Positions 1 through 58,400 of a stretch of DNA of 64,000 bases are shown one piece after another. The DNA is from Macrostomum lignano (lineage: Eukaryota), in assembly GCA_002269645.1 (NCBI GenBank), contig NIVC01003121.1, positions 5,243 to 69,242 on the forward strand, given 5' to 3'. Made by a program: the position numbers and the translations under genes. Positions within the stretch are counted from its first letter, which is position 1. Each line of letters opens with the position of its first letter. Below the pieces are notes generated by a model. That model was given only the letters and a program-made list of their open reading frames with translations, searched no databases and was not told the DNA's origin.

Positions 1-1694
1 TGGTGCCAACGTTGGACGCCACCAAGGCCTGGCTGGCCAAGAATCCCGCGGACACGGCGGCTGCGGCTGGCGATTCGCCTCCAGAGCTGCTGGCCGCGGC
101 CTGCGGCAGCGCCGGATTCAAGGCGCACCTGCTGGGCGAGCTGCAGCAGCTGGGCAAGCAGAAGGGGCTGCAGAGCTTCGAGCAGGTTGGTTGCTGGATT
201 TGCTGGCTGACTGGGCTGCCGCTTCCAGTAGCTTGGACTGACGGGTGATATCATGTGGTCTAAAGTGATGATCTTAGGTGACCTTGAATGGTGATCTGAG
301 GTAACCTTGAATGGTGATCTGAGTTGATCTTGAATGATGATCTGAGGTGACCTTGAATGGTGATCTGAGGTGACCTTGAATGGTGATCTGAGGTGACCTT
401 GAATGGTGATCTGAGGTGACCTTGAATGGTGATCTTAGGTGACCTTGAATGGTGATCTTAGGTGACCTTGAATGGTGATCTGAGGTGACCTTGAATGGTG
501 ATCTGAGGTGACCTTGAATGGTGATCTTAGGTGACCTTGAATGGTGATCTGAGGTGACCTTGAATGGTGATCTTAGGTGACCTTGAATGGTGATCTGAGG
601 TGACCTTGAATGGTGATCTTAGGTGACCTTGAATGGTGATCTGAGGTGACCTTGAATGGTGATCTGAGGTGACCTTAGGTTTTCTCCGATAACCTTCAGT
701 GTTCACAGGGTGGCTGGCTTTCGGTGATCTGATAAGTTTAACCCTATCGAACCCGGTACCATGGCCCACAGCTTTGCCGGCTTGCTATCATAGACAACTT
801 TTTTAAGCCTGCAGAAATCTTAGCCGCAAGAACACAGACTTACAGGTGACGGATTTGAATCGTAGTCTAAAAAAAGTATAAAAACACGAGAAAGGTAACC
901 ATTTTTTGCAGGAGGTATGGAAAAAAGAACTGATATTTGACGTTTTGAAGAATTTGTTTCCTGTGTTTCGACCCCATCTGACATTGGAACGAGAAGAAGA
1001 AACGGATACGTACTCAAATTTCGTACACTGCACAGGATAAGTTGCGCAAACTTGTGCAAACTCTGAACACTGGCTGAGGAGTCACAGGGAACAGGGAGTG
1101 CACTTAAACAAATAAACTGCATGGCCATATTGGATACCAAAAGCTCTAATTTAAATAACTTGTAATGTAACAGCGATACAAAATAAAGCCTAATAAAGCC
1201 TTACAAACAGGATATATACACAAATGGAAAGCGTACTAAAATGTATAATACACAAAATAGTATATAAGGTAACACAGAAAAAGAAAAAAATAACGGCAAT
1301 AAAGAAACACACAAACCAGGCGGTCAATCGGTGGAGCTGTGAATTAAAGAAGAACGAAATGAAGCAATTATAAACGCTGTAAAATAAGAAGCGTGAGTGA
1401 GACCCAAAGGCATCAAGTCTCAGTTAACTTTGAGACCATTTTAGGTTTCCGTTGAGATATCTTGAGTGATTCTGAGTGTCTTAACTTCAATTCATGCCTA
1501 AGCTTTTTAAAATATAAACTCAACATCGCCTCCACCTCAACAACCCTCGCCAGGTGAAGGCCATCCTGCTGCACCCCGAGCCTTTCAGCGCCGAGAACGA
1601 CCTGATGACGCCCACGATGAAGCTGAAGCGGCCGCAGTTGCGCAAGCGGTTCGCCGACGCCTTCGACGCCATGTACGCAGAGGTGGAGCCGTGA
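1..1694 (+). CDS. ACSL: Long-chain fatty acyl-CoA synthetase, last two exons (partial; left-arm copy)
   Basis: Exons <1-185 (..LGKQKGLQSFEQ, donor GTTGGT) and 1554-1694 (VKAILLHPEPFSAENDLMTPTMKLKRPQLRKRFADAFDAMYAEVEP*), a typical ACSL C-terminus. Confidence 0.88.
262..676. repeat. 23-bp minisatellite (TGGTGATCTGAGGTGACCTTGAA)n in ACSL last intron
   Basis: About 18 tandem units; mirror at ~56434-56845. Confidence 0.95.
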
Positions 1695-1843
1695 GGCGCC
1701 GTGTCGCCTGATCACCCCATTGCCTCATTAATCAGAGGAGATTATTTAAAAACTCCCTAAACTTCCCACTAGATATCCTGTTGACTCTACTGTTAGTAGC
1801 GTGCAAAGTCTGTCATTTTTTGCAGTTGATGGACAATCAAAGT

Positions 1844-1943
1844 AGAAAGACGCTGCACTCACAAATCCTGCAACATTCGACAGTATGATGATGAGAAAGA
1901 CGCTGCACTCACAAATCCTGCAACATTCGACAGTATGATGATG
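1844..1943. repeat. 50-bp perfect tandem duplication leading into the GAT array
   Basis: agaaagacgctgcactcacaaatcctgcaacattcgacagtatgatgatg occurs at 1844 and 1894. Confidence 0.9.
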
Positions 1944-2703
1944 ATGGTGATGATCATGATGATGATGGTGATGATCATGATGATGATGGTGATGATCATG
2001 ATGATGATGGTGATGATCATGATGATGATGGTGATGATCATGATGATGATGGTGATGATGATCATGATGATGGTGATCATGATGATGATGGTGATGATGA
2101 TCATGATGATGATGGTGATGATGATCATGATGATGGTGATCATGGTGATGATGGTGATGATGATAATGATGATCATGATGATGATGGTGATCATGATGAT
2201 GATGGTGATGATGATCATGATGATGGTGACCATGATGATGATGGTGATGATGATCATGATGATGATGGTGATGATGATCATGATCATGGTGATCATGGTG
2301 ATGATGATCATGATGATGATGGTGATGATGATCATGATGATGATGGTGATGATGATCATGATGATGGTGATCATGATGATGATGGTGATGATGATCATGA
2401 TGATGGTGATCATGATGATGATGGTGATGATGATCATGATGATGATGGTGATAATGATAATGATGATCATGATGATGATGGTGATCATGATGATGATGGT
2501 GATGATGATCATGATGATGGTGATCATGATGATGATGGTGATGATGATCATGATGATGGTGATCATGATGATGATGGTGATGATGATCATGATGATGGTG
2601 ATCATGATGATGATGGTGATGATGATCATGATGATGATGGTGATGATGATCATGATGATGGTGATCATGGTGATGATGATGATGATGATGGTGATCATGA
2701 TGG

Positions 2704-2734
<31 letters not shown>
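1935..2734. repeat. Compound (GAT/GGT/CAT)n trinucleotide microsatellite
   Basis: About 800 bp of ATG/GTG/ATC triplets; mirror at ~54399-55176. It explains the His-rich and Met/Ile-rich ORFs. Confidence 0.95.
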
Positions 2735-2736
<2 letters not shown>

Positions 2737-3299
2737 GGACTCAGCCTCCGAACTCGCAATTGAAGTTCAGTAAATAATAAAGTTTAAAAAATGGTGATTA
2801 GAGATCATATCTGAAGTTAAATGTATTTTTTGAAACTAATGCTAGACTTGCGAGTGCAGCGTCCCTGTACTTTAGAGTTGTCCGTGATGCAGTGTTGTGG
2901 AAACTTGAGTTTATTCCCCTACCAAAAAAGGCTCGCTGCGCATTAATTCCGTTTTTTGTTTCTTAGAAAAGCCGCGCAAGTTCCTGCCGAGCATTTACCG
3001 TATTCCGCTGTTTGCAATATTCGGCTCTATAAACATTTTAAACAACTTCCAAATCATTAAAATTGGTTGTTTTGCTAATATTAATTAGACACTTTGACCG
3101 CTTGGAGCTGTTCATCGAATGCTTTAATAACAATGTGTAAGAAATATTATATAATACTAGCACAATACACTTTTTGCTATCCAGTCTGATCGAACTGCCG
3201 CTTCTGTGGATTGAAAGTACCGTTTCGAATTTTGTTTCGTTTGGGCTGGCGTTTTTATTATTTCCGGCCCTTTAAACAGATCCCGGCTGAAGCACATGT

Positions 3300-4420
3300 A
3301 GCTCCCGAAATTCGGAATCCCACAATCCTGAATTCTTGAATCCTATCCTGCATTTCTGAATCCAATCCCAAATTTCCGAATTATACAATCCCGAATTTCC
3401 GAATCCTATAATACTTAATTTCCGAATCCTACAATTCTGAATTTCGGAATCCACCCCGAATTTTCGAATTATACAATCCCGAATTTCTGATCCTACAATC
3501 CTGAATTTCCGAATCCAATCCTGAATTTCTGAATCCAATCCCGAATTTTCAAATGCAATCCTGAATTTTGGAATTCAATTCCGAATTTCCGAATTATACG
3601 ATCCTTAATTTCCGAATCCTAAATCCGGAATTTCCAAATCCTACAATCCTGCAATCTGCAGTACTGCAATCATGAATTTCGGAATCCTGCAATCCAGAAT
3701 TTCTGAATCAGACATGTAAAATTCTGAATTTCCAAATCCCACAATCCTGAATTTCCGAATCCTAAAATCCTGAATTTCCGAATCCCACAATCCTGAATTT
3801 CCGAATCCCACAATCCTGAATTTCCGAATCCTACAATCCTGAATTTCCGAATCCTACAATCCTAAATTTCCGAATCCTACAATCCTGAATTTCCGAATCC
3901 CACAATCCTGAATTTCCGAATCCTACAATCCTGAATTTCCGAATCCTACAATCCTGAATTTCCGAATCCTACAATCCTGAATTTCCGAATCCTACAATCC
4001 TGAATTTCCGAATCCTACAATCCTGAATTTCCGAATCCCACAATCCCGAGTTTCCGAATCCTACAATCCCGAGTTTCCGAATCCTACAATCCCGAGTTTC
4101 CGAATCCTACAATCCCGAGTTTCCGAATCCTACAATCCTGAATTTCCGAATCCTACAATCCTGAATTTCCGAATCCTACAATCCTGAGTTTCCGAATCCT
4201 ACAATCCTGAGTTTCCGAATCCCACAATCCCGAGTTTCCGAATCCTACAATCCCGAGTTTCCGAATCCTACAATCCCGAGTTTCCGAATCCTACGAGTAC
4301 AATCCCGAGTTTCCGAATCCCACAATCCCGAGTTTCCGAATCCCACAATCCCGAGTTTCCGAATCCTACAATCCTGAATTTCCGAATCTCACAATCCTGA
4401 GTCTCCGTATCCCGAATATC
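3300..4420. repeat. 23-bp minisatellite (AATCCTGAATTTCCGAATCCTAC)n
   Basis: Homogeneous core with degenerate edges; shorter mirror at ~52915-53830. Confidence 0.93.
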
Positions 4421-5048
4421 TGACTGTGTTTTGGGGGTTTCCGAACACAGAATTCTCAAATCCGGGCCGAGATTTGATCTAAGCCGTTAATTCCTGCATC
4501 CGCCTGCCCTGAGTCGCATTGGCCATGACTTCTCATCATGAATTCTACACATGGCGTCCAGCTATGTACGAATTAGTCTGCGCATGCGGAACACACCAAC
4601 CAGCCTTCCAACTGTAATCCTTTGTCTGTTAATATTTAATGCCTGCAATGCTTGCACATGCAGCGGGTCGCAGGTCACGTAAGTTTGCAGTCCGCTGTAA
4701 TTAATAATCTCTCACACCTGTGTCAGGTTTTTCATTTGCTACACGCGCGCCCATGCAACAAACGCACCGTGAGCTGGCGTTTCTATAGCAACATTCAGTA
4801 CAATTGATACAATATATATTTCTGTGTATACACATATTATGGTTAGCACATATATTTTAACTTAGCTATTCCTTCCATCGATAAATACATGCATTCGCGA
4901 TTGTGAGAAGCGTCATCTGCAGCGATAATGTCAGAGTTTGTACAGTAATAAGCGGTATATGTACCTGCGCGCCAGCGCTTATTCAACTCGCCGGCCAAAT
5001 TAATCTTTCATCGCGTTCTCGGCTTGCCGCAGTGTCCATATAGCCAGC

Positions 5049-5762
5049 ATGCAACAGCAGCATCTGCGGCTGAGCTCTGCTGGGCATGGCAGAAAGCCGA
5101 ATCATCATCGGAGGCGGCAGCACCACCAACTGCATCGGCTGCTAGAGCTGCCTGAACAGCAGCAGAGCTCGGCCATAGACAATGGGATCAGTAAACCGTC
5201 GGAGGATTTCGGAGCGGCGGGCAGCGTCCTCTGGCAGAACTTTAGCCGGAATTTCCGAAGCGCTCTGATTGAAACTCGCCTGCGGGCCAAGCGGCAGGAG
5301 GCTGCAGAGGCGCCGGAGGCAGCGGGGACGGCAGCGACGGCGGCGACGGCATCGACGGGTCCGGATGGCACGGAGAGCTGCAGCGTTAAGAAGAGTCCCG
5401 GAGTGCAGCAGCAGCAGCTCAGGTATCAGCAGCTTCGAGCCCGCCGACGCTGGCATCTGCTGCGGCAGAACCTGGGCCGCGTGGTGCAGGCGGCGCAACA
5501 GAAAGACGACCTATCTGTCCGGATTGCAAAGCCCCAGCAACAGCAGCAGCTCACCGGCTGGGAGCTGTTCAGCCGCACCGGACCGAGAATCCGTCAGCAG
5601 CTCTACTCGCGCTACAGTTGCGGCCACGGCGGAGTGACCGCCGCCTCCGCCGCGGTTATCGCGAACCTGCCGAGCGCTCCCGACCAGCCGATGGCAACTG
5701 TCGGCCTTCCAGCGCTGCCAGCAGCGTCGCGTAGTAGGAATCGTCGAGGCAATCAGCAGTGA
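5049..5762 (+). CDS. Hypothetical single-exon protein, 237 aa
   Basis: ATG-initiated GC-rich ORF. All indels relative to the mirror copy are multiples of 3. Trp-containing blocks WQNFSRNFR, RARRRWHLLRQNL and GWELFSRTGPRIRQQLYSRY. Confidence 0.6.
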   Translation: MQQQHLRLSSAGHGRKPNHHRRRQHHQLHRLLELPEQQQSSAIDNGISKPSEDFGAAGSVLWQNFSRNFRSALIETRLRAKRQEAAEAPEAAGTAATAATASTGPDGTESCSVKKSPGVQQQQLRYQQLRARRRWHLLRQNLGRVVQAAQQKDDLSVRIAKPQQQQQLTGWELFSRTGPRIRQQLYSRYSCGHGGVTAASAAVIANLPSAPDQPMATVGLPALPAASRSRNRRGNQQ

Positions 5763-6368
5763 ATTTGGAGTAATCACGAGTAACTTCGACTCATGCTCAT
5801 CAATGCTCATCGACTCGTTCTAAACTCATGAAGTTTTTTTACACCGTACATTGTAATGCTAAATAAGAACGCGCATTGTTAAAAGCTCTAGAAAATGATA
5901 ATTGCACTAAAAACTGCCAAGCTGCGCGCCGACAGCTCTGTCTGCCTGTCTGTCTTTCCCCCCCCTAGTGTCAGAACTGTGGCACAGTTGGCAGGGCTCC
6001 CTACTGGCCAAAGTGCTAAGCTACTGCTAGCAATTTCTCACTCGCTCTTGCTCTGCAAGTGGCACACTGGCGGCAGCTGAGGGCGAACGCATTGTACAAG
6101 AGCTGCTGCTGCACTGCTATTCGGCGGGCGGACTGTTAAGGCACTCTGTAGACAATGAAAATGTCTACTTAGCAACGGGTCTCTCTCCCATCTTTTTCTA
6201 CACCTTTCTATCACTTACTCTAAGTCTTAGTCCGAGTATTTTTGCCTTAGGAAGCTCAACTTCATCGGAACGAGAAACTGTTTCGAGTAGATTAAACTGA
6301 AAGCTAGCGGCGAGGCTTTTGAATAAGTCACTGAGAATCAAATCAAGGTCACCGTATAACTGGGCAAA

Positions 6369-9216
6369 ATGGACGGAGAAGCAGTGGAAGCTGCTCAAGA
6401 AACAGCAGTTGAAGAAGCAGCCGAAGGAACAGCCGAAGAAGCGGGTGAAGCAGCAGATAAAGCAGGTAAAGCAGCAGATGAAGCAGCAGATGAAGCAGGT
6501 AAAGCAGCAGATGAAGCAGGTAAAGCAGCTGAAGAAACAGGTGAAGCAGCTGAAGAAGCAGCAGAAGAAGCAGGTAAAGCAGCTGAAGAAGCAGCTGAAG
6601 AAACAGGTGAAGCAGCTGAAGAAGCAGGTGAAGCAGCAGAAGAAGCAGCTGAAGAAGCAGGTGAAGCGGCTGACGAAGCAGCTAAAGAAGCAGGTGAAGC
6701 GGCTGAAGAAGCAGGTGAAGCGGCTGAAGAAGCAGCTGAAGAAGCAGGTGAAATAGCCGAAGAAGCAGCAGATAAAGCAGCTGAAGAAGCAGCTGAAGAA
6801 GCAGGTGAAGAAGCAGGTGAAGCAGCCGAAGAAGCAGCTGAAGCAGCTGAAGAAGCAGCTGAAGAAGCAGCTGAAGCAGCCGAAGAAGCAGCTGAAGAAG
6901 CAGCCGAAGAAGTAGCCGAAGAAGCAGCTGAAGAAGCAGCTGAAGAAGCAGCCGAAGAAGCAGCTGAAGAAGCAGGTGAGAAAGGTGATGGGAACAGGAG
7001 GTCAAGCAGGATCATAGCGATAGCAAAACGAGGATTATATATGATTTTATTATAATTTTATTAAAGGAAATTAGGAAAAGTAAAAACACTAGGGATTAAA
7101 AGTGAAGCTCCACATCGCCATCAATTCTCCCCTCACCCCCGCCCGACCGCAGAGCCGCCCCCGGACTACGAGGTCACCCGGGCGCGCATCGACGAGCTGA
7201 ACGCCCAGCTGGAGAGCGAGCCGCTGCCGGAGGAGGAGACCCAGCGCAGGCCGACGCGAATCCGCTTCCAGGAAGGGACGGACAGCTTTGAAGTGCCGGA
7301 GCACTACCACGAGGCGCTTTCAGCAGCGGGCGTGTCGGCGGAGGAAGCGAAGAAGTACTATCGCACATTCAAGCTATTCGACGCGGATGGATCCAACAGC
7401 ATCGATGCCGGAGAGCTTTACAGCTGTCTGCAGGTTTCAGGCCAGGTGAGAGTGCAGTTGGAGCTCACCTATGCTCGTAGCCTAGCGTGTGTGTGTGCTC
7501 AGGTTACCGATATTCGTAATTCTCTCCTGTCTGAAGTTGTCCCCGAAAACCTGACCAACTAACGCCAAGCAATCCATGACTTCCACCAGGCACCGGAAAG
7601 CCAGGAGGAAATCCAGCAGATGCTGTCGGAGAGCGACACGGACGCCAGCGGCAGCATGGAATTTGTGGAATTCGCCTCGCTGATGTCGCGTCTTTGCAAG
7701 CCGGAGGCGGACGTGCGCCAGCAGCTGGTGAGCAGCTTCCAGGTGTTTGACAAAGACCAGAGCGGCTACTTGGACCGGGAGGAGCTGCGCGACGCCATCT
7801 ACAGCATGGGGCCGGTGGAGCTTTCCGAGGAGGAGTTCGACGAACTGCTCAGCGCGGTGGACAAGAACGGAGACGGCCGCATCGACTATGAAGGTGAATT
7901 TTAGTGCGCAAGAACACCTTGCTTGCATTGCATTTGTTCGCGAAATAAAAGTTCGAGTAAGAATATAGGCTGGTCTAGTTTGTGCATTCAATTGATTTCT
8001 TTTCAGAGTTTGCCGCGATTCTTTTAACTGACATCAATCAGCTGATTCAGACTACAAAAGAAGAGATGCAACGGAAAGGGTGAGATTTAAATAGAAATTT
8101 ATGTTTTGAAAAGTGACCATGGCTTTACTTGTAGTTTAAAGTACGAGTACGCTCTTTTGCAGGCATCCAGCACACCCGGAACATCCGGAACATCCTGAGC
8201 ACCCTGAGCATCCTGAGCATCCTGAGCACCCTGAGAATCCTGAGCATCCTGAGCATCCTGAGCACCCTGAGCATCCTGAGCATCCTGAGCATCCTGAGCA
8301 TCCAGACCAATCAGACAAAGAGAAAAGTCGCGGGAATGGAAGGAAGGGGGCTGGAGCAGCTGCAGTTTCAATCTCTAGGTCTGGTGGAGCTGAAGGAGCT
8401 GATGCCGCGACTATAGGTGAAGCTCCAGTGGAGGAACCATCAGCTGAAGAAGAACCACCCATTGAGGAACCTCCTGCTGAAGAGCCGCCAGCTGAAGAGC
8501 CACAAGCTGAAGAGCCGCCAGCTGAAGAACCACAAGCTGAAGAACCACCAGCTGAAGAACCACCAGCTGAAGAACCACCAGCTGAAGAACCACAAGCTGA
8601 AGAACCACCAGCTGAAGAACCACCAGCTGAAGAACCACCAGCTGAAGAACCACCAGCTGAAGAACCACCAGCTGAAGAACCACCAGCTGAAGAACCACCA
8701 GCTGAAAAACCACCAGCTGAAGAACCACCAGCTGAAGAACCACCAGCTGAAGAAGAACCACCAGCTGACGAAGAACCACCAGCTGAAGAACCACCAGCTG
8801 AAAAAGATCCACATCTTGAGGAAAAACCAGTTGAAGCACCGCAAAGTCAGGAACCACATGTTGTACCCGCTGGGCAACCAGGTGTTTTTGTTTCTGTACA
8901 GCCAGGTGCTGTGCAAGTTGAACAGCCAGTGGTGGTACCAGCAAATCAGCAATCGGATGAGAAATCGCATGCCTCAGGTGGCATCCAACTTCAATTCAAT
9001 GCTGGGGATGATTCACAGAAGCAGAATCAAGTACAGGCCGATGTGAAACAGAAGGACGCTCATGGTCAGCATCAAGTTAAAATTAAAAGACAGTCTGCCA
9101 AGTCTCGAGATGACCGATCTAGGCAGTCATCCGGTCATAGCTTCAAATCAGGCTCTCGGAAGTCGGCATCAAAGCCAAATTCAAAATCAGGTGGCGGTTC
9201 CAGTGACTCAGACTAA
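6369..9216 (+). CDS. Calmodulin-like 4-EF-hand protein with acidic repeat tails (left copy, carrying a CCDC181-derived insert)
   Basis: Predicted exons 6369-6975, 7153-7445, 7590-7893, 8007-8079 and 8163-9216 total 2331 nt (in frame). EF loops DADGSNSIDAGE, DTDASGSMEFVE, DKDQSGYLDREE and DKNGDGRIDYEE. The first intron is inferred. Confidence 0.72.
6996..7268 (+). other. Captured fragment of CCDC181 (shortened intron 2 plus first ~116 nt of exon 3)
   Basis: Matches ~10997-11046 (aggtcaagcaggatcatagcg..gcaaaac..atgatttt) and ~11600-11809 (..gtgaagct.cacatcgc..gcag/AGCCGCCCCCGGACTACGAG..ATCCGCTTC). Absent from the mirror gene. Confidence 0.88.
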
Positions 9217-10718
9217 ATAGTTTTGAGAAAAAATGTACGGTAAAAACAGTGAGCGCTGTTTCTTAATTACGAATATATGCGCCATATTTATGAGACTGAC
9301 AATTTAGTTTTTTGACGACTCAGATATAATTAAAGCGCTTTATGATCTTTAATCCAACCGCAGAAGCCAAAACACAGTTTCAAAGAATCGCTCTGTTATA
9401 TTTTTAGCGGCTAAATACTCAATTATATAAACATTCTGTGTGTTGATAAAATTGCTTGTTATACATGTACATTAATTTGGGTCAGAGCTGTATAAATTTG
9501 ACTAAAAATGATATTGTAACTTTATTGATATTTTAACTTTTTTGATAAATTTGTTGAGATAGTCTTCACCTTAATGGAATTAAAACTGATAAGTTAAGTC
9601 TTATGGCTTTTTGAATAGCTTTTAAAAAAGAACTAATTTTACGCAACACCGGAACAATGATTGTTGTCATGGTAATTTGTTTAACTATGCAGAGACAAAT
9701 TTAACGTTGAAAAATGAGCTAATTTTGCAAAGGGTGTGCACTGCTCTGAAAACATTTTTGTACTATTGAATGCTTTCTTGCTGATAGCTTACTTCTTGTT
9801 GTTGGCATTTTTTAAAAATGCAACAAAAATGACGCACAAACTAATAACATACAAATAAACTATCATTAAAATAATAGCGTTGGCATCACTTTTAAATGAA
9901 AACCTGCCAAATGAGTCAATGACAAGTAGTCATAGGGATTCAAAGGATTTTTCACTGAAGTACGATTGTAATCACTCATTGATCTTCATCTATGCTTAAT
10001 AAATAGTTTTATACTAGTTTTGATTAGGTGAATAAAATACGATTAGGATAAAATAAATATATAATAGGTGTGAATTTTTTATTTCGAGACAGTACATTAT
10101 TACAACAAATAGAACAGACTTTGAAGTTAGGATGAAAGCAAAGCTGTAATTCTAAATAACAACTATGTTGATCTATCAATTTTCTAAATATTTTGTTCTT
10201 ATAATAATTTCCAGTGACTAAGGCCAATCAGATGTCTATTAAATATTCTGAGTGCTGATTCACTGCCATGTCATTGAATGGATTTCACACACACACACAC
10301 ACATATATATATGTATATTTACTCCTGTACTATATAGTGTTCTTTTCTACTAGAAAACTTTAGCAAAAAATAATAAAATATTACTTATATTACTTATGAG
10401 ATATGAATAAACTAATAGATAAATTATTTGCTATCAGTTTAAAGAAAATATCATTTAAGTCTTTTTTATTATTTAGGTGACAATTTTTTCAAGTAAACAT
10501 TGCAGAACAGATAAAACCTTTTTTATGCTTAAAAATACCATCTAGAACTTGTTAATCTGTTATCTGTTGAGTCCAGAAGGTTATTGTAAATTCTAGCAAA
10601 GTGACTAACACATTGTTTTGATATTGAAATTTCAGCTCAAAATCAACTTTTTGAACTGTTTTTTAACCAAAACATCTTCCAGACCGCCGAGCCCCAGCAG
10701 CCGCCCCCATCGGCAGGC

Positions 10719-13419: not shown

Positions 13420-13829
13420 ATAGTTTTTCATGATAACAACTGGACTGGCGACTTGGGTTTGAGCTGCGACTCAGGCTGTAAAGCTGTCCGATTGCAAACT
13501 GCCAGCTCATCCTGCAACTCTTGCAGATTTGTTTGCTCCTAGAAGATTTCTGATTTTATTTCTATTTTTCTTTTTGACTATATAATTTTGGCAATCAGTG
13601 CTTAGCCCATCATATTTTCCTTCTTTGTAGGCTCTTTTACCTGTGATTTATAAATGCTACTCAGATTTATTGTTTGTTTCACGGATTCTAAACTCGCATA
13701 TCAGCACTTGTCTCTGTGGCTCTGTGCACTTTTATATGACCCACGCACTGCCTTTTGTGAGCTGCCTGTCCTCTGCTTGCGATCCTCTTCTCGATCTCCA
13801 ATTCTGTCACTGCCCTGTCACTCTCTCCG

Positions 13830-15330: not shown

Positions 15331-15920
15331 CCCGCTCTTTTTTAACAAGCAAGCATTTATGGTATTAAAATTCAGACCAAGTGACCCGTTCAGCTTCAGT
15401 TTAGCTGGTTTGTTTCCCTCCTAACTTTGCAGCTCGTTTTTCTTCTGTTGGCAACAGGTCGCAATTTCTGTCTCTGTCAGACCTCTCTCTAGTTAGCAGG
15501 GCTCTAGCGGACTGTGCAATTAATTAAGCTGGTACATGCTTACAGTTCGGCTTTGTGTCTGATTTGCCCCTGGTCCTTTTCTGCCTTGCGCGCACCTTAC
15601 TTTGCCTCCGGCTTATCTGTTCCTATGTTATATATTTATTATTTTTATATAATATACATATTTTTATCCGATAACTCAGCGGTGTAAACGTGCAACAGAT
15701 ATGAACCCTCTTGTGTTTATTGCATATTTTGCCTGCGTATGAATAAACTCTAATTTGTACACACTTTGAAAACACTGCGCAGCAAACTGCAATTACAAGA
15801 CTGACAGCTCGGCTTCTCAACACTTCATTGCATCAAATTTCTCCATCTGAACGCCACCGATGACCATCTGGAAAGCAAATTCCAACCACTTATGGCAACT
15901 AGATGAATCTACTAGAATAT

Positions 15921-21260: not shown

Positions 21261-21399
21261 TCGGAGAGACCAGCAGATGAAGTTTGTCTTCAATCGGCAC
21301 ATGCTTGAGTTTACCGTGATTGACTGTTTGGATTTCCGAGTCGGATTTTTATTTCTAAAAGCAGAGACTTTTTGGTATTCCCTTTGTCTGCGATTGTGG

Positions 21400-22108: not shown

Positions 22109-22310
22109 TTGCACTGGTCAGTGACCGGTGATTGCACTGGTCAGTGATCGGTGATTGCACTGGTCAGTAACCGGTGATTGCACTGGTCAGTGACCGGTGA
22201 TTGCACTGGTCAGTGACCGGTGATTGCACTGGTCAGTAACCGGTGATTGCACTGGTCAGTGACCGGTGATTGCACTGGTCAGTGACCGGTGATTGCAATG
22301 GTCAGTAACC
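22109..22310. repeat. 23-bp minisatellite (TGCACTGGTCAGTGACCGGTGAT)n
   Basis: About 9 units on the left; ~15 at 34090-34450. Confidence 0.92.
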
Positions 22311-41100: not shown

Positions 41101-41195
41101 GGTGAAGATTCTATAGTTTGTGAAGATTATAGTTCGTGAAGATTCTAGTTTGGGAAGATTCTATGGTTTGTGAAGATTCCATAGCTTGTGAATAT
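38105..41195. repeat. Mirror fold-back 16-bp satellite
   Basis: Units at ~38105-39560, loop ~39560-39670, inverted units ~39670-41195. The first half is dominated by the AAACTATAATCTTCAC variant. Confidence 0.93.
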
Positions 41196-46574: not shown

Positions 46575-48093
46575 GCCTGCCGATGGGGGCGGCTGCTGGG
46601 GCTCGGCGGTCTGGAAGATGTTTTGGTCGAAAAAAATTTGATTTGGAGCTGAAATTTCAATTTCAAAACAACGTGTTCGTCACTTTGCTAGAATTTATTG
46701 TACAATAAACTTCTGGATACAGCATATTAGCAAGATCTAGATGGTCTTTCTAAGCATAAAAAAGTTTTTTTATCTGTTCTATAATCTTTAATTCAAAAAA
46801 ATTGTCACCTAAATAATAAAAATAAAGATTTAAATGATATTTTCTGTAAACTGGTAACAATCAACTTATATATTAGTTTATTCATATAGTTATGACAAGA
46901 TACAGTAGAATCTTGTAAGTAATATAAGTAATATTTTTAATATTTTATTGATAACGTAGTTTTTCTAGTAGAAAAGGTTACTTTCTAGTAAAGGAGTAAA
47001 TATATTTGTGAAATCAATGCTACATTCAATGGCATGTCAGTGAATCAGCACTCAGAATATTTAATAGACATCTGATAGGCCCTAGTAACAGGAAATTATT
47101 GTAAGAACAAAATATGTAGAAATGGATAGATCAAAATAATTGTTATTTAAAATTACAGCTTTGCTTTCATCCAAACTTCAAAGTCTGTTATATTTGATGT
47201 AATGATGTACTGTCGAATTAAAAAAATTCACACCTACTATATTTTTATTTTATACTACGCTCGTATCATATTCAATTAATAAAAACTAGTACAAACTATT
47301 TATTAAGCATAGCTGAAGATCAGAAGATAGCTAAAAATATAGCAGTACTGTTGTGAAAAATCCCTTGAATCCCTATGAGCTATGACTACTTGTCATTTGG
47401 CAGGTTTTCATTTAAAAGTGATGCCAACGCAATTTTTTAATGATAGTTTCTTTGTATGTTATTAGATTGTGCGTCATTTTTGTTGCATTTTTAAAAATTC
47501 CAGCAACAAGAAGTAAGCCATCAGCAAGCAAGCATTCAATAGTACAAACATGTTTTCAGAGCAGTGCACACCCTTTGGAAAATTAGCTCATCTTTTGACG
47601 TTAAATTTGTCCCTGCATATTTAAACAAATTACCATGACAACAATCGTTGTTCCGGTGTTGCGTAAAACTCCTTTAAAAAGCTATTCAAAAAGCCATAGG
47701 AGTTAACTTATCAGTTTTAGTTCCATTTAAGTAAAGATTATCTCAACAAATTTATCAAAAAAGTAAAAATAAACACACAAAATATCATTTTTAGTTGAAT
47801 TTATACAGCTCTGACGCAAATTCATGTATAATAAGCAATATTACCAGCACACAAAATGTTTATATAATTTTGTATTTAGCCGCTTAAAATATAACAGAGC
47901 GACGATTTGAAGAAAAGCCATACGTATTGTAACTGTGTTTTGGCTTCTGCGGTTGGATTAAAGATCATACGCTTTATATCTCAGTCCTCAAAAAACTAAA
48001 TTGTTAGTCTCATAAATATTGGCGCCGATAAATTACAGTAAAAAGAAACAGCGCTTTCTGTTTTACGGTACACTTTTTCTCAAAACTAAATAT

Positions 48094-50943
48094 TTAGTCT
48101 GAGTCACTGGAACCGGAACCGCCATCTGATTTTGAATTTGGCTTTGATGCCGACTTCCGAGAGCCTGATTTGAAGCTACGACCAGATGACTTCCTAGATC
48201 CGTCATCTCGAGACTTGGCAGACTGTCTTTTAATTTTAACTTGATGCTGACCATGAGCGTCCTTCTGTTTCACATCGGCCTGTACTTGATTTCGCTTCTG
48301 TGAATCATCCCCAGCATTGAATTGAAGTTGGATGCCACCTGAGGCATGCGATTTCTCATCCGATTGCTGATTTGCTGGTACCACCACTGGCTGTTCAACT
48401 TGCACAGCACCTGGCTGTACAGAAACAAGAACACCTGCTGGTTGCCCAGCGGGTACTACATGTGGTTCCTGACTTTGCGGTGCTTCAACTGGTTTTTCCT
48501 CAAGATGTGGATCTTTTTCAGCTGGTGATGGTTCTTCAGCTGGTGGTTCTTTTTCAGCTGGTGATGGTTCTTCAGCTGGTGGTTCTTCGGCTGGTGGTTC
48601 TTCAGCTGGTGGTTCTTCGGCTGGTGGTTCTTCGGCTGGTGGTTCTTCGGCTGGTGGTTCTTCAGCTGGTGGTTCTTCGGCTGGTGGTTCTTCAGGTGGT
48701 GATGGTTCTTCAGCTGGTGGTTCTTCGTCTGGTGGTTCTTCAGGTTGTGATGGTTCTTCAGCTGGTTCTTCAGCTGGTGGTTCTTCAGCTGGTGATGGTT
48801 CTTCAGCTGGTGGTTCTTCGGCTGGTGGTTCTTCAGCTGGTGATGGTTCTTCAGCTGGTGGTTCTTCGGCTGGTGTCTCTTTAGCTGGTGGTTCTTCAGT
48901 GGCTGGCTCTTCGGCTGGTGGTTCTTCAGCTGGTGATGGTTCTTCAGATGGTGGTTCTTCAGCTGGTGGCTCTTCAGTGGGTGGCTCTTCAGCAGCAGGT
49001 TCCTCAATGGGTGGTTCTTCTTCAGCTGATGGTTCCTCCACTGAAGCTTCACCTATAGTCGCGGCATCAGCTCCTTCAGCTCCACCAGACCTAGAGATTG
49101 TAACTGCAGCTGCTCCAGTCCCCTTCCATCCATTCCCGCGACTTTTCTCTTTGTCTGGTTGGTCTGGATGCTCAGGGTGCTCAGGATGTTCCGGGTGTGC
49201 TGGATGCCTGCAAAAGAGCGTACTCGTACTTTAAACTACAAGAAAACCCATGGTCACTTTAAAAAAAATAAATTTCTATTTAATCTCACCCTTTCCGTCG
49301 CATCTCTTCTTTCGTAGTCTGAATCAGCTGATTGATGTCAGTTAAAAGAATCGCGGCAAACTCTGAAGAGAAATCAATTGAATGCACAAACTAGACCAGT
49401 CTATATTCTTACTCGAACTTTTATTTCGCGTACAAATGCAATGCAAGCAAGGTGTTCTTGCGCGCTAAAATTCACCTTCATAGTCGATACGGCCGTCTCC
49501 GTTTTTGTCCACAGCGCTGAGCAGTTCGTCGAACTCCTCCTCGGAAAGCTCCACGGACCCCATGCTGTAGATGGCGTCGCGCAGCTCCTCCCGGTCCAAG
49601 TAGCCGCTCTGGTCTTTGTCAAACACCTGGAAGCTGCTCACCAGCTGCTGGCGCACGTCCGCCTCCGGCTTGCAAAGACGCGACATCAGCGAGGCGAATT
49701 CTACAAAGTCCATGCTGCCGCTGGCGTCCGTGTCGCTCTCCGACAGCATCTGCTGGATTTCCTCCTGGCTTTCCGGTGCCTGGTGGAAGTCATGGATTGT
49801 TGACGTTAGTTGGTCGGGTTTTCGGGGACAACTTCAGACAGAAGAGAGAGAATTACTAATATCCGTAACCTGAGCACACACGCACACGCTAGGCTAAGAA
49901 GATTAGGTAAGCTCCAACTGCACTCTCACCTGGCCTGAAACCTGCAGACAGCTGTAAAGCTCTCCGGCATCGATGCTGTTGGATCCATCCGCGTCGAATA
50001 GCTTGAATGTGCGATAGTACTTCTTCGCTTCCTCCGCCGACACGCCCGCTGCTGAAAGAGCCTCGTGGTAGTGCTCCGGCACCTCAAATCTGTCCGTCCC
50101 TTCCTGGTGGCGGCCGGAGCCTGCTCTGCTGCCGCTTGCCTTGCTGCCGTCCCTGCCACCTTCTCTGTAACCCTTTTTTCGATTGGCGCTTCCCTTCCGA
50201 CTGTCTCCGTCACCGAATTTTTCTCTTGCGCTGCCTTTCCTGCTGCCTCCTCTGCCTTGTCCGTCACCGTTTTGCTCTCTTGCGCTGACTTTCCTGCTGC
50301 CTCCTCTGCCTTGTCCGTCACCGTTTTGCTCTCTTGCGCTGACTTTCCTGATGCCTTTCTTCCCGTCACCTTTCTCACCTGCTTCTTCAGCTGCTACTTC
50401 GGCTGCTTCACCTGCTTCTTCGGCTGCTTCTTCAGCTGCCTCACCTGCTTCTTCGGCTGCTTCCTCGATTGCTTCTTCGGCTGCTTCACCTGCTTCTTCA
50501 GCTGCTTCTTCGGCTGCTTCACCTGCTTCTTCAGCTGCTTCTTCGGCTGCTTCTTCGGCTGCTTCTTCGGCTGCTTCACCTGCTTCTTCAGCTGCTTCTT
50601 CGGCTGCTTCACCTGCTTCTTCAGCTGCTTCTTCGGCTGCTTCTTCGGCTGCTTCACCTGCTTCTTCAGCTGCTTCTTCGGCTGCTTCACCTGCTTCTTC
50701 AGCTGCTTCTTCGGCTGCTTCACCTGCTTCTTCACCTGCTTCTTCAGCTGCTTCTTCGGCTGCTTCTTCGGCTGCTTCACCTGCTTCTTCAGCTGCTTCT
50801 TCGGCTGCTTCACCTGCTTCTTCGGCTGCTTCACCTGCTTCTTCAGCTGCTTCTTCGGCTGCTTCTTCGGCTGCTTCTTCGACTGCTTTTTCAACTGCTT
50901 CGTAAGCTGTTTCTTGAGCAGCTTCCACAGCTTCTCCGTCCAT
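48094..50943 (-). CDS. Calmodulin-like 4-EF-hand protein with (EAAEE)n N-terminus and (HPE)n/(EEPPA)n C-terminus, ~834 aa
   Basis: Exons 50943-49930, 49779-49476, 49362-49290 and 49207-48094 total 2505 nt (in frame), with GT-AG sites and four canonical EF-hand loops. Confidence 0.85.
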
Positions 50944-51555
50944 TTTGCCCAGTTATATGTTGACCTTGATTCGCAAGTGACTTATTCAAAAGCCTCGCCG
51001 CTAGCTTTCAGTTAAATCTACTCGAAACAGTATCTCGTTTCGGTGAAGTTTTTTGCGCAAAGTTGAGCTTCCTAAGGCAAAAATACTCTAAGACTAAGAG
51101 TAAGAGATAGAAAGGTGTAGAAAAAGATCGGAGAGAGACCCGTTGCTAAGTAGACATTTTCATTTTCTATAGAGTGCCTTAACAGTCTGCCCGCCGAATA
51201 GCAGTGCAGCAGCTCTTGTGCAATGCGTTCGCCCTCAGCTGCCGCCAGTGTGCCACTTGCAGAGCAAGAGCGAAGTGAGAAATTGCTAGCAGTAGCTTAG
51301 CACTTTGGCCAGTAGGGAGCCCCGTCAACTGTGCCACAGTTCTGACACTAGGGGGAAAGACAGACAATCAGAGCCTGCACTACCTTCGCGCTGAGCTGTC
51401 GGCGCGCAGCTTGGCAGTTTTTAGTGCAATTATCATTTTCTAGAGCTTTTAACAATGCGGCGTTCTTATTTAGCATCACAATGTACGGTGTAAGCAACTT
51501 CATACGAGCGTAAGTTGTTGAGCATGAGTCCAAGTTACTCGTGATTATTCCAAAT

Positions 51556-52269
51556 TCACTGCTGATTGCCTCGACGATTCCTACTACGCAACGCTGCTGG
51601 CAGCGCTGGAAGGCCGACAGTTTCCATCGGCAGGTCCGCGATAACCGCGAAGGGGGCGGTGGTCACTTCGCCGAGGCCGCAGCTGTAGCGCGAGTAGAGC
51701 TGCTGACGGATTCTCGGTCCGGTGCGGCTGAACAGCTCCCAGCCGGTGAGCTGCTGCTGTTGCTGGGGCTTCGCAATCCGGACAGATGAGTCATCTCTCT
51801 GTTGCGCCGCCTGCACCACGCGGCCCAGGTTCTGCCGCAGCAGATGCCAGCGCCGGCGGGCTCGAAGCTGCTGATACCTGAGCTGCTGCTACTGCTGCGC
51901 TCCGGGACTCTTCTTAACGCTGAAGGTCTCCGTGCCATCCGGACCCGTCGATGCCGTCGCCGCCGTCGCCGCTGCCTCCGGCGCCTCTGCAGTCTCCTGC
52001 CGCTTGGCCCGCAGGCGAGTTTCAATCAGAGCGCGTCGAAAATTCCGGCTAAAGTTCTGCCAGAGGACGCTGCCGCCGGTGCCGACGCCGCTGCCCGCCG
52101 CTCCGAAATCCTCCGACGGTTTACTAATCCCATCGTCTATGGCCGAGCTCTGCTGCTGTTCCGGCAGCTCTAGCAGCCGATGCAGTTGGTGGTGCTGCCG
52201 CCTCCAATGATGATTCGGCTTCGATCTGCCATGCCCAGCAGAGCTCAGCCGCAGATGCTGCTGTTGCAT
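51556..52269 (-). pseudogene. Mirror copy of the 237-aa hypothetical gene with a premature stop
   Basis: Collinear with 5049-5762, but a poly-Gln CAG is TAG at 51889-51891, splitting it into ORFs 51889..52413 and 51556..51819. Confidence 0.55.
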
Positions 52270-54398
52270 GCTGGCTATGGACACTGCGGCAAGCCGAGAA
52301 CGCGATGAAAGATTAATCTGGCTGGCGAGTTGAATAAGCGCTGGCGCGCAGGTACATGTACCGCTTATTACTGTACAAACTCTGACATTATCGCTGCAGA
52401 TGACGCTTCTCACAATCGCGAATGCATGTATTTATCGATGGAAGGAATAGCTAAGTTAAAATATATGTGCTAACCATAATATGTGTATACACAGAAATAT
52501 ATATTGTATCAATTGTACTGAATGTTGCTATAGAAACGCCAGCTCACGGTGCGTTTGTTGCATGGGCGCGCGTGTAGCAAATGAAAAACCTGACACAGGT
52601 GTGAGAGATTATTAATTACAGCGGACTGCAAACTTACGTGACCTGCGACCCGCTGCATGTGCAAGCATTGCAGGCATTAAATATTAACAGACAAAGGATT
52701 ACAGTTGGAAGGCTGGTTGGTGAGTTCCGCATGCGCAGACTAATTCGTACATAGCTGGACGCCATGTGTAGATGAGAAGATGATGAGAAGTCATGGATAA
52801 TGCGACTCAGGGCAGGCGGATGCAGGAATTAACGGCTTAGATCAGATCTCGGCCCGGATTTGAGAATTCTGCGGTGGGAAACCCCCAAAAACACAGTCAG
52901 ATATTCGGGATACGGAGACTCAGGATTGTGAGATTCGGAAATTCAGGATTGTAGGATTCGGAAACTCGGGATTGTGGGATTCGGAAACTCGGGATTGTAC
53001 TCGTAGGATTCGGAAACTCGGGATTGTAGGATTCGGAAACTCGGGATTGTAGGATTCGGAAACTCGGGATTGTAGGATTCGGAAACTCGGGATTGTGGGA
53101 TTCGGAAATTCAGGATTGTAGGATTCGGAAATTCAGGATTGTAGGATTCGGAAATTCAGGATTGTAGGATTCGGAAATTCAGGATTGTAGGATTCGGAAA
53201 TTCAGGATTGTAGGATTCGGAAATTCAGGATTGTGGGATTCGGAAATTCAGGATTGTAGGATTCGGAAATTTAGGATTGTAGGATTCGGAAATTCAGGAT
53301 TGTAGGATTCGGAAATTCAGGATTGTGGGATTCGGAAATTCAGGATTGTGGGATTCGGAAATTCAGGATTTTAGGATTCGGAAATTCAGGATTGTGGGAT
53401 TTGGAAATTCAGAATTTTACATGTCTGATTCAGAAATTCTGGATTGCAGGATTCCGAAATTCATGATTGCAGTACTGCAGATTGCAGGATTGTAGGATTT
53501 GGAAATTCCGGATTTAGGATTCGGAAATTAAGGATCGTATAATTCGGAAATTCGGAATTGAATTCCAAAATTCAGGATTGCATTTGAAAATTCGGGATTG
53601 GATTCAGAAATTCAGGATTGGATTCGGAAATTCAGGATTGTAGGATCAGAAATTCGGGATTGTATAATTCGAAAATTCGGGGTGGATTCCGAAATTCAGA
53701 ATTGTAGGATTCGGAAATTAAGTATTATAGGATTCGGAAATTCGGGATTGTATAATTCGGAAATTTGGGATTGGATTCAGAAATGCAGGATAGGATTCAA
53801 GAATTCAGGATTGTGGGATTCCGAATTTCGGGAGCTACATGTGCTTCAGCCGGGATCTGTTTAAAGGGCCGGAAATAATAAAAACGCCAGCCCAAACGAA
53901 ACAAAATTCGAAACGGTACTTTCAATCCACAGAAGCGGCAGTTCGATCAGACTGGATAGCAAAAAGTGTATTGTGCTAGTATTATATAATATTTCTTACA
54001 CATTGTTATTAAAGCATTCGATGAACAGCTCCAAGCGGTCAAAGTGTCTAATTAATATTAGCAAAACAACCAATTTTAATGATTTGGAAGTTGTTTAAAA
54101 TGTTTATAGAGCCGAATATTGCAAACAGCGGAATACGGTAAATGCTCGGCAGGAACTTGCGCGGCTTTTCTAAGAAACAAAAAACGGAATTAATGCGCAG
54201 CGAGCCTTTTTTGGTAGGGAATAAGCTCAAGTTTCCACAACACTGCATCACGGACAACTCTAAAGTACAGGGACGCTGCACTCGCAAGTCTAGCATTAGT
54301 TTCAAAAAATACATTTAACTTCAGATATGATCTCTAATCACCATTTTTTAAACTTTATTATTTACTGAACTTCAATTGCGAGTTCGGAGGCTGAGTCC

Positions 54399-54431
<33 letters not shown>

Positions 54432-55416
54432 CCATCATGATCACCATCATCATCATCATCATCACCATGATCACCATCATCATGATCATCATCACCATCA
54501 TCATCATGATCATCATCACCATCATCATCATGATCACCATCATCATGATCATCATCACCATCATCATCATGATCACCATCATCATGATCATCATCACCAT
54601 CATCATCATGATCACCATCATCATGATCATCATCACCATCATCATCATGATCACCATCATCATCATGATCATCATTATCATTATCACCATCATCATCATG
54701 ATCATCATCACCATCATCATCATGATCACCATCATCATGATCATCATCACCATCATCATCATGATCACCATCATCATGATCATCATCACCATCATCATCA
54801 TGATCATCATCACCATGATCACCATGATCATGATCATCATCACCATCATCATCATGATCATCATCACCATCATCATCATGATCACCATCATCATGATCAT
54901 CATCACCATCATCATCATGATCACCATCATCATCATGATCATCATTATCATCATCACCATCATCACCATGATCACCATCATCATGATCATCATCACCATC
55001 ATCATCATGATCATCATCACCATCATCATCATGATCACCATCATCATGATCATCATCACCATCATCATCATGATCATCACCATCATCATCATGATCATCA
55101 CCATCATCATCATGATCATCACCATCATCATCATGATCATCACCATCATCATCATGATCATCACCATCATCATCATACTGTCGAATGTTGCAGGATTTGT
55201 GAGTGCAGCGTCTTTCTCATCATCATACTGTCGAATGTTGCAGGATTTGTGAGTGCAGCGTCTTTCTACTTTGATTGTCCATCAACTGCAAAAAATGACA
55301 GACTTTGCACGCTACTAACAGTAGAGTCAACAGGATATCTAGTGGGAAGTTTAGGGAGTTTTTAAATAATCTCCTCTGATTAATGAGGCAATGGGGTGAT
55401 CAGGCGACACGGCGCC

Positions 55417-58400
55417 TCACGGCTCCACCTCTGCGTACATGGCGTCGAAGGCGTCGGCGAACCGCTTGCGCAACTGCGGCCGCTTCAGCTTCATCGTGGG
55501 CGTCATCAGGTCGTTCTCGGCGCTGAAAGGCTCGGGGTGCAGCAGGATGGCCTTCACCTGGCGAGGGTTGTTGAGGTGGAGGCGATGTTGAGTTTATATT
55601 TTAAAAAGCTTAGGCATGAATTGAAGTTAAGACACTCAGAATCACTCAAGATATCTCAACGGAAACCTAAAATGGTCTCAAAGTTAACTGAGACTTGATG
55701 CCTTTGGGTCTCACTCACGCTTCTTATTTTACAGCGTTTATAATTGCTTCATTTCGTTCTTCTTTAATTCACAGCTCCACCGATTGACCGCCTGGTTTGT
55801 GTGTTTCTTTATTGCCGTTATTTTTTTCTTTTTCTGTGTTACCTTATATACTATTTTGTGTATTATACATTTTAGTACGCTTTCCATTTGTGTATATATC
55901 CTGTTTGTAAGGCTTTATTAGGCTTTATTTTGTATCGCTGTTACATTACAAGTTATTTAAATTAGAGCTTTTGGTATCCAATATGGCCATGCAGTTTATT
56001 TGTTTAAGTGCACTCCCTGTTCCCTGTGACTCCTCAGCCAGTGTTCAGAGTTTGCACAAGTTTGCGCAACTTATCCTGTGCAGTGTACGAAATTTGAGTA
56101 CGTATCCGTTTCTTCTTCTCGTTCCAATGTCAGATGGGGTCGAAACACAGGAAACAAATTCTTCAAAACGTCAAATATCAGTTCTTTTTTCCATACCTCC
56201 TGCAAAAAATGGTTACCTTTCTCGTGTTTTTATACTTTTTTAGACTACGATTCAAATCCGTCACCTGTAAGTCTGTGTTCTTGCGGCTAAGATTTCTGCA
56301 GGCTTAAAAAAGTTGTCTATGATAGCAAGCCGGCAAAGCTGTGGGCCATGGTACCGGGTTCGATAGGGTTAAACTTATCAGATCACCGAAAGCCAGCCAC
56401 CCTGTGAACACTGAAGGTTATCGGAGAAAACCTAAGGTCACCTCAGATCACCATTCAAGGTCACCTCAGATCACCATTCAAGGTCACCTCAGATCACCAT
56501 TCAAGGTCACCTCAGATCACCATTCAAGGTCACCTAAGATCACCATTCAAGGTCACCTCAGATCACCATTCAAGGTCACCTAAGATCACCATTCAAGGTC
56601 ACCTCAGATCACCATTCAAGGTCACCTCAGATCACCATTCAAGGTCACCTAAGATCACCATTCAAGGTCACCTAAGATCACCATTCAAGGTCACCTCAGA
56701 TCACCATTCAAGGTCACCTCAGATCACCATTCAAGGTCACCTCAGATCACCATTCAAGGTCACCTCAGATCATCATTCAAGATCAACTCAGATCACCATT
56801 CAAGGTTACCTCAGATCACCATTCAAGGTCACCTAAGATCATCACTTTAGACCACATGATATCACCCGTCAGTCCAAGCTACTGGAAGCGGCAGCCCAGT
56901 CAGCCAGCAAATCCAGCAACCAACCTGCTCGAAGCTCTGCAGCCCCTTCTGCTTGCCCAGCTGCTGCAGCTCGCCCAGCAGGTGCGCCTTGAATCCGGCG
57001 CTGCCGCAGGCCGCGGCCAGCAGCTCTGGAGGCGAATCGCCAGCCGCAGCCGCCGTGTCCGCGGATTCTTGGCCAGCCAGGCCTTGGCGGCGTCCAACGT
57101 TGGCACCACGACGCCGAGCAGGCAGGAGCGCTCGCTGCGGCCATCAACAAAGACCTGATCGATGGCCGGGTTCAGGCAGTACACCAGCTCGATCTTCTCC
57201 GGCGCGATGTACTCGCCCTGGGCCAGCTTGAACAGGTGCTTGACCCGGTCAACGATGCGGTAGGAGCCGCCGGGAGCAGCTGGGCGATGTCGCCGGTGTG
57301 CACCCAGCCGTCGGAGTCAAGAGTCTCGGCCGAGCGCTCCGGCTGCTTGAAGTAGCCAGCGAAGCAGGTCGGGCCGCGGATGCACAACTCGCCGCGACCG
57401 TCAGCCTCCGCATTCGGACAGTCGGCGTCGGGGGCGTCAGCGAGGCGGACTTCAATGCCCAGCATCGGCCGGCCGGTGTGGTTGCTGGCCGGGTCGCCGG
57501 GCCGCTGGCACAGGCCGAGGCCGCAGGTTTCCGTCTGGCCGAAACCCTGCGGGGGTCGGGGAGGTGAGGGACGCTCGGATGGATCGATAGCAGAGAGGTT
57601 GCAGGAAGAGTGGGAGCGAGGGGTGAGAGACGGGAGTTAAAAGGAGTAAAGGGAGATCAAAATGGGAGCGACAGGAAGGATGGAGAGGGAGCGGGAGAAG
57701 TAGAGGAAGGATGGAGAGGGAGCGGGAGAAGTAGAGGAGGATGGAGAGGAGCGGGAGAAGTAGAGGAGGATGGAGAGGGAGCGGGAGAAGTAGAGGGAGG
57801 ATGGAGAGGGAGCGGGAGAAGTAGAGGGAGGATGGAGAGGGAGCGGGAGAAGTAGAGGGAGGATGGAGAGGGAGCGGGAGAAGTAGAGGGAGGATGGAGA
57901 GGGAGCGGGAGAAGTAGAGGGAGGATGGAGAGGGAGCGGGAGAAGTAGAGGGAGGATGGAGAGGGAGCGGGAGAAGTAGAGGGAGGATATAGGTAGGGAA
58001 AAGTAGGCGAGGGAGAGGAAGAAGTAGAGTTACGGAAGACTGTAGAGAAGTGCACCAGTAGTTTAAAAACGTCAGCCCCAAAGCACTGTCCCCCTATTAA
58101 GTCGCCGAATTCTTCAACACAAGAAGTGCAGCGCTGGTCCTCCAAAAGTTCGCCCAGCTCTCTCACCTGCACCACCGGGCAGCCCAGCGCGGCCTTCACA
58201 AAGTTCAGCGTGTCCGCAGAAATCGGCGCCCCGCCAACGGCTACAAAGCGGACGCGGCCGCCCAGGCCTTCCTGGACGCGGCGGAACACCAGCCGATCCC
58301 ACAGCGTGTCCTTGTCAACCCGGAGCTGCGACAGCCGGCGGCTCTTGCGGGACAGCGCCGTGTCAAGGATGGCCGACTTCAGCCGGCTGCCCGACACCGC

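Follow-up and report, generated by a model that had tools for sequence, protein, structure and literature searches.

An apparent giant palindrome in a Macrostomum lignano scaffold is probably an assembly artefact made of two paralogous contigs joined head-to-head

Genuine palindromes, of which the ampliconic palindromes of the human Y chromosome and fold-back inversions are examples, are traversed by reads of single molecules and end at defined boundaries on the outside. Their arms are each other's closest relatives, typically share more than 99.9% identity and are maintained by conversion. False duplications of assemblies have hallmarks of their own: a gap that separates two copies placed on the same scaffold, a surplus of erroneous k-mers, lowered read depth per copy and discordant read pairs (Ko et al. 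2022, PMC9516828). False chimeric PacBio palindromes with the length of a raw read (7-17 kb) have also been described in other assemblies. The locus considered here lies on NIVC01003121.1, a scaffold of 69,242 bp from the Macrostomum lignano assembly Mlig_3_7 (GCA_002269645.1). Record positions 5243-69242, a stretch of 64,000 nucleotides henceforth called the window, are arranged as a large inverted repeat with two alkaline phosphatase genes near its centre. An earlier note, made from the sequence alone, had proposed a genuine giant palindrome born of fold-back or breakage-fusion, with the caveat that two allelic or homeologous haplotigs scaffolded head-to-head leave the same signature. Our analysis speaks against the headline of that note, since the centre is unspanned, the arms are not sister copies, no outer boundary exists and the locus runs straight through the supposed centre in two gap-free copies. 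The caveat is what the evidence favours, and it fits the published genome and assembly. Very probably, the palindrome is a scaffolding artefact: two paralogous (haplovariant) contigs made by Canu were wrongly linked head-to-head by SSPACE.

Mlig_3_7 was assembled with Canu 1.4 from PacBio continuous long reads (CLR), polished with Pilon and scaffolded by SSPACE 3.0 with Illumina and 454 pairs. The read runs are SRX1063031 and SRX2866466-SRX2866494; REAPR found only 64% of the bases to be error-free, and 180-312 Mb are duplicated (PMC5730564). The DV1 genome consists of three diverged subgenomes, S, L1 and L2, and Mlig_3_7 has 69.6% of its sequence in three-copy blocks and 11.9% in four-copy blocks, most of the latter with only three-fold read coverage and hence described as 'erroneously represented paralogs' (PMC10733133). 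According to the same study, M. lignano paralogues differ by about 2.2% single-nucleotide polymorphisms (SNPs) plus large indels, 93% of read pairs map to multiple loci, and the large chromosome MLI1 has undergone many rearrangements (PMC10733133). The scaffold names of our locus do not occur in the supplement of that paper.

Self-comparison of the window was used to check the mirror symmetry, and the inverted repeat is indeed there: positions 1-28002 are colinear with the reverse complement of 57108-28393. The whole scaffold is made of contig A (33,592 bp), 42 N and contig B (35,608 bp), and of nothing else. Contig A comprises an arm of 33,244 bp and an overhang of 348 bp at the gap, while contig B comprises an arm of 34,029 bp and a tail of 1,579 bp; the suspicion that the arms might exceed 28 kb was thus correct. 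The 5,242 bp that lie to the left of the window (record 1-5242) were recovered via the acyl-CoA synthetase gene that straddles the arm boundary of the window; where the recovered piece meets the window, 98 of 98 bases agree. They mirror window positions 57109-62421 down to scaffold base 1, with identities of 95.6-99.1% (97.9% over the first 760 bp). No outer boundary of the arms can therefore be drawn, as homology stops only where contig A ends, at scaffold base 1.

A purine-rich satellite of the GGAGAG type is found close to that end. Contig B reads through it (62523-63138), and contig A ends about 100 bp short of it (record position 1 corresponds to window position 62421). It seems to be repeats that determine where A and B break at either end.

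At the centre, the spacer of some 350 bp and the 42-N gap announced by the earlier note were both found, the former being 348 bp long and the latter the only run of N in the window. No sequence in the scaffold spans the centre, which is the gap between the two contigs. When continuity was tested, the flanks of the gap were not continuous with each other. To the left of the gap, the locus goes on colinearly in the downstream direction; to its right lies reverse-complement arm sequence, which starts in a C/G homopolymer 348 bp 'earlier' in locus coordinates, so that arm B begins within this homopolymer on the first base past the gap. Within the window, a second match to the 348-bp spacer was not found. 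The gap is located in intergenic DNA, about 2.4 kb past either phosphatase stop codon, and a reading frame is therefore not involved. The phosphatase open reading frames (ORFs) converge as had been described, with 4,469 bp between their stop codons.

Two further copies of the locus in Mlig_3_7 were found by cluster look-ups, one on a scaffold of 832 kb and one on a scaffold of 83 kb. The former was covered by two pieces, L002 and L003, which correspond to positions 378022-410351 of NIVC01000180.1, and L002 contains no N. The latter, L004, lies on NIVC01003679.1 and is gap-free; at its end, the L004 sequence that was used matches arm A, arm B and L002 exactly. Together with arms A and B, the locus has been assembled four times. 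L002 positions 7843-14083 align at 97.5% with window positions 22100-28350, the last of which is the final base of contig A, and the sequence of L002 then runs on. The first 30 and the last 30 bases of the spacer have exact matches in L002 and L004, where the spacer is colinear (to 14083 and to 14099, respectively) and is followed in both copies by TGCGAAACGG... Past the spacer, the two copies agree for hundreds of bases (TGCGAAACGGATAGG...), and neither of them folds back. No inverted arm copy was found in L002 across the 12.7 kb beyond the centre position. What L002 does contain, about 1.1 kb past the last base of contig A, is a second alkaline phosphatase on the same strand, with 91% nucleotide identity.

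Gene models from ML2, an older assembly made from the same PacBio reads with a different assembler, were also considered. On one strand they contain either WD40 and two phosphatase domains, in the order WD40, phosphatase, phosphatase, or two to three phosphatase stretches. The ML2 protein models cannot tell the A, B and L004 haplotypes apart because the coding sequence is identical there. Since the locus is colinear in L002, L004 and the ML2 gene models, the spacer amounts to no more than the 348 bp that come next along the path; it is ordinary downstream DNA of the locus and not the loop of a palindrome. The normal order of the locus is thus WD40, reverse-transcriptase fragment, phosphatase 1, the supposed centre and, in tandem, phosphatase 2.

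The tandem phosphatase paralogue lies on the same strand about 3.5 kb downstream of the first gene (15217-16712 in L002; gene span 10001-16125 in L004). Two protein models, PAA88643.1 (566 amino acids, gene span 6.8 kb) and PAA50289.1 (372 amino acids, 6.1 kb), cover phosphatase 1 together with its tandem copy. These models probably join the two phosphatases, as a side effect of 1-bp indel errors in phosphatase 1. When further annotated copies of the downstream paralogue were sought, models were found only on the scaffolds of L002 and L004.

Comparison of the full arms revealed substitutions at 3.1% of aligned bases (807, of which 437 are transitions), and indels make up 12.8% of the alignment columns. 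These figures match the published level of divergence between M. lignano paralogues, 2.2% SNPs with heavy indels. Identity along the arms is a mosaic, with blocks of 100% at 0-4 kb and 24-27 kb and blocks of 86-95% at 5-12 kb. Forty indels of at least 20 bp separate the arms, and most are changes of array length in minisatellites, of which there are more than 20 arrays.

Kinship was examined at 199 informative sites between arm positions 18.4 and 24.3 kb, in a four-way comparison of the two arms with L002 and L004. L002 stood alone at 67 sites, A at 66 and B at 26. The pattern that unites A and B against L002 and L004 was found at 22 of the 199 informative sites, and the pattern that unites A and L002 against B and L004 was found at 8. 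In unique sequence, B and L004 differ by 0-5 mismatches per 500 bp; for A and B the figure rises to as many as 14-39 at 21-22 kb. Arms A and B are not nearest relatives, as B lies closer to L004 than to A. In the reverse-transcriptase fragment, arm A has 10 private changes at 22.6-23.5 kb (among its private variants are 22613, 22695, 22918, 22992 and 23030); all 10 are substitutions and 9 are transitions, which identifies them as real variants and not as long-read indel noise. The arms accordingly represent two different haplovariants, and the four copies fall into roughly three haplotype classes in unique sequence. The persistence of the palindrome through arm-to-arm conversion, also proposed in the earlier note, found no support: homogenisation is not evident, and the pattern shared by A and B is in the minority. 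A recent fold-back of a single molecule was considered as well and is ruled out by the same site patterns, as the arms are not sister copies.

Differences of another kind accumulate near the contig ends. In the inner 3 kb, nearly all differences between the arms are 1-bp indels, and these are dense in the last 650 bp. Over the last 400 bases of the arm, private differences from the four-way consensus amount to 20 in A, 2 in B and none in L004. The outer end of contig A contains 11 gap openings in 760 bp. The phosphatase of arm A is identical to copy B except for 1-bp deletions at 25657, 25684 and 25767, two of which lie in short C or G runs, and about 40 codons are out of frame as a result. 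The deletion at 25767 is also present in L004 (around position 11500). The 565-amino-acid product of arm A had no exact match in the protein collection, and no phosphatase gene has been called on arm A. These small indels of arm A are errors that remained in the consensus where contig ends have poor support or the sequence is multi-copy; the phosphatase deletions look like residual long-read errors that were beyond repair by Pilon in multi-copy sequence.

These observations can be set against the features of false duplication. A gap separates the copies on one scaffold and the limits of the copies are contig ends; L002, L004 and the ML2 gene models give one colinear path through the supposed junction; paralogues in the source genome diverge at the level seen between the copies; and errors are in excess, as either end of contig A has clusters of miscalls and of 1-3 bp indels private to it and the phosphatase of arm A is frameshifted. 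We favour false duplication because a gap separates the copies, the other copies are colinear, the arms are not sister copies and the ends of contig A are rich in errors.

The most likely course of events can be outlined. In the DV1 line, each locus exists as several diverged copies (subgenomes S, L1 and L2), and Canu assembled this one four times: within the 832-kb scaffold, within the 83-kb scaffold, and as the short, nearly co-extensive contigs A and B. The latter two break at two shared places, namely the purine satellite on the outer side and a point just upstream of the tandem phosphatase paralogue on the inner side. SSPACE would then have joined the inner ends of A and B across an estimated gap of 42 bp, giving rise to a 69-kb scaffold that resembles a palindrome. 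The link presumably came from spurious same-strand read pairs, which seemed valid only because the locus is represented more than once. Two other sources for the link, cross-mapping of ordinary forward-reverse or reverse-forward pairs and mis-mapping between the internal inverted 16-bp satellites, were tried and rejected since their geometry fails (overlaps of about 30 kb or inserts of 27-32 kb).

Several considerations weigh against a scaffolding error. A join by SSPACE requires several consistent read pairs. Ordinary pairs that cross-map between co-extensive contigs would correspond to about 30 kb of overlap and ought to be discarded; for two contigs to be linked head-to-head with a small positive gap, same-strand pairs must lie close to both inner ends. 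We can explain such pairs only by artefacts of library or orientation, and a real inverted junction would yield the same pairs. Furthermore, Canu splits hairpin-like long reads, and one would expect a real palindrome to break into two contigs at its centre. Lastly, B is not trivially a duplicate of L004, since their satellite arrays are of unequal length, and the four copies could all be real.

The main alternative is that one chromosome variant of DV1, for instance of MLI1, carries a real inverted duplication with arms of at least 33 kb and a spacer of about 390 bp, produced by fold-back repair or by fusion of two homeologous copies, the centre having been broken when Canu split hairpin-like reads. 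This would provide the same-strand pairs that the placement by SSPACE needs; two inverted arms on either side of a short single-copy spacer are what a fold-back classically looks like; the differing satellite lengths would allow all four assembled copies to be real; and MLI1 is a chromosome with many reported rearrangements. We nevertheless consider a real duplication unlikely. Its centre is not spanned by sequence and its outer boundary is lacking. The lack of sisterhood between the arms, with B closer to L004 and few sites that group A with B, excludes a simple fold-back, so that only a fusion of haplovariants or heavy conversion at a later time would fit. In addition, the gap-free copies L002 and L004 and the ML2 gene models are colinear, and most four-copy blocks of Mlig_3_7 have been reported as artefacts. 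Long palindromes with short spacers are, moreover, unstable in eukaryotic genomes. A specific version of the real join would be an MLI1 variant present in DV1, with an inverted duplication of at least 33 kb whose arms come from different haplovariants. Such a variant might be the relic of a head-to-head fusion between homeologues, or of a breakage-fusion-bridge event, during karyotype reshuffling in the neopolyploid, tolerated in spite of a spacer of about 390 bp; we regard it as quite improbable.

A last explanation invokes the sequencing chemistry: if a SMRTbell adapter had been missed, a forward insert followed by its own reverse complement could have seeded a palindromic assembly. False palindromes of 7-17 kb are known from PacBio data, and Mlig_3_7 was built on PacBio CLR reads; however, arms of 33-34 kb exceed the range reported for such chimeras. 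Neither are the 3.1% substitutions (over half of them transitions), the 40 indels of at least 20 bp and the haplotype blocks common to other contigs compatible with two readings of one insert. The centre is a run of N between contigs, and the tail of contig A is colinear with the other copies and does not fold back. A hairpin-read artefact is thus effectively excluded by the divergence of the arms, by their length and by the gap. A mis-join of two haplovariant contigs is the explanation that we favour.

The features of the window are listed in Table 1.

Table 1. Features in and around the inverted repeat. Positions refer to the window unless given as record positions.
Feature	Position	Strand	Mirror copy	Remarks
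Arm A	1..28002	+		Portion of contig A within the window (record 5243-33244); the contig begins 5,242 bp left of the window
Spacer	28003..28350	+		348 bp; terminal overhang of contig A
Gap	28351..28392	.		42 N, SSPACE estimate; sole link between the contigs
Arm B	28393..62421	-		Inner 34,029 bp of contig B; mirrors contig A minus the overhang
Tail found in contig B only	62422..64000	-		1,579 bp to the scaffold end; includes purine-rich satellite 62523-63138
Long-chain acyl-CoA synthetase, arm A (P0127)	record 4885-6936			Ends at window 1694
Long-chain acyl-CoA synthetase, arm B (P0126)	57172..59221	-		Annotated part; more AMP-binding exons to ~62078
Repeat-rich gene, annotated	6369..9216	+		Record 11611-14458; 776 amino acids; AGCAGCTGAAGA and EEPPA-type repeats; extensin-like Pfam match
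EF-hand exon region in the 776-amino-acid gene	~7542-7907	+	EF-hand ORF 49468-49833 -	Pfam
CCDC34-like coiled-coil ORF	11645..12769	+	44268-45410 -	PF13904 match weak, below the curated cut-off, in both copies
Inverted pair of 16-bp minisatellite arrays	15911-16950 facing 16974-18448		38105-41201	Gap-free
WD40-repeat gene	19050..21264 (start approximate)	+	35355-37510 -	3 exons, intronic minisatellites; Pfam WD40
Reverse-transcriptase (RVT_1) fragment	22359..23500	+	32909-34039 -	
Alkaline phosphatase, arm A	24266..25963	+		PF00245, E = 3e-115; three 1-bp deletions relative to copy B
Alkaline phosphatase, arm B	30433..32133	-		PF00245, E = 2e-129; intact, 566 amino acids, single exon; annotated on NIVC01003121.1

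The count of six genes in the mirrored block was about right: the block holds the 3' part of the acyl-CoA synthetase, the EF-hand protein, the EEPPA-repeat protein, the CCDC34-like ORF, the WD40 gene, the reverse-transcriptase fragment and the alkaline phosphatase. The phosphatase of arm B is 100% identical to M. lignano UniRef entries. In all four copies, the reverse-transcriptase fragment is flanked by the WD40 and phosphatase genes, and its insertion must therefore be older than their divergence. Annotation is asymmetric within 20433-42133, where only the phosphatase of arm B and the WD40 gene of arm A have been called and their mirror copies are unannotated, a pattern consistent with annotation filters against duplicates that are redundant or broken by errors. 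Rfam and tRNA scans of the window gave no matches.

Each arm also contains a small inverted repeat of its own. In arm A, about 64 copies of a 16-bp unit (ACTAGAATCTTCACAA) face about 90 reverse-complement copies across a spacer of 23 bp. The two halves of this local inverted satellite measure about 1-1.5 kb each; it is found in four out of four copies of the locus with different array lengths (around 1600-3930 in L002 and 1560-4075 in L004), and given its presence in all of them it is likely to be real. Minisatellites are, in general, very dense: more than 20 arrays with periods of 11-46 bp are found in 64 kb, for example at 269-676, 1935-2736, 3303-4412, 6404-6979, 8449-8802, 13838-15313, 19407-19918 and 57673-61716. 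Several are intronic, as in the acyl-CoA synthetase and WD40 genes, and some are formed by coding repeats.

If the two contigs were mis-joined, the mirrored block of six genes should enter a count of neither gene duplications nor structural variants, and the same holds for the 'converging phosphatase pair'. NIVC01003121.1 may thus serve as a worked example of how the redundancy of Mlig_3_7, combined with short-read scaffolding, can lead to false palindromes as large as a scaffold. False palindromes of this kind would inflate gene counts, mislead analyses of copy number and synteny, and yield spurious 'palindrome' matches in genome scans. Several GenBank gene models at the locus are, in addition, distorted by residual 1-bp indel errors.

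The locus shares with the ampliconic palindromes of the human Y chromosome and with breakage-fusion-bridge fold-backs the presence of inverted arms of tens of kilobases, a short unduplicated spacer and genes mirrored tail-to-tail. Unlike genuine palindromes, its centre is unread, its arms differ by 3% plus 13% of indel columns and are not sisters, and homology ends only at contig ends. The resemblance to the over-represented four-copy blocks of Mlig_3_7 (Mol Biol Evol 2023, msad250, PMC10733133) lies in the existence of four copies with about three haplotype classes; however, that paper gives genome-wide statistics only, and the satellites of B and L004 differ in length here. Another close counterpart is the false 'heterotype' duplication (Ko et al. 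2022, Genome Biol 23:205, PMC9516828), at which purge_dups and purge_haplotigs are aimed. As in heterotype duplication, two diverged copies are found on one scaffold with a gap between them, their boundaries coincide with contig ends and consensus errors are enriched at the ends; the M. lignano genome is, furthermore, known to hold diverged haplovariants. Two differences can be pointed out. The copies are probably paralogues from the subgenomes of a neopolyploid (S, L1, L2) and not alleles of a diploid, and they are inverted and form the entire scaffold.

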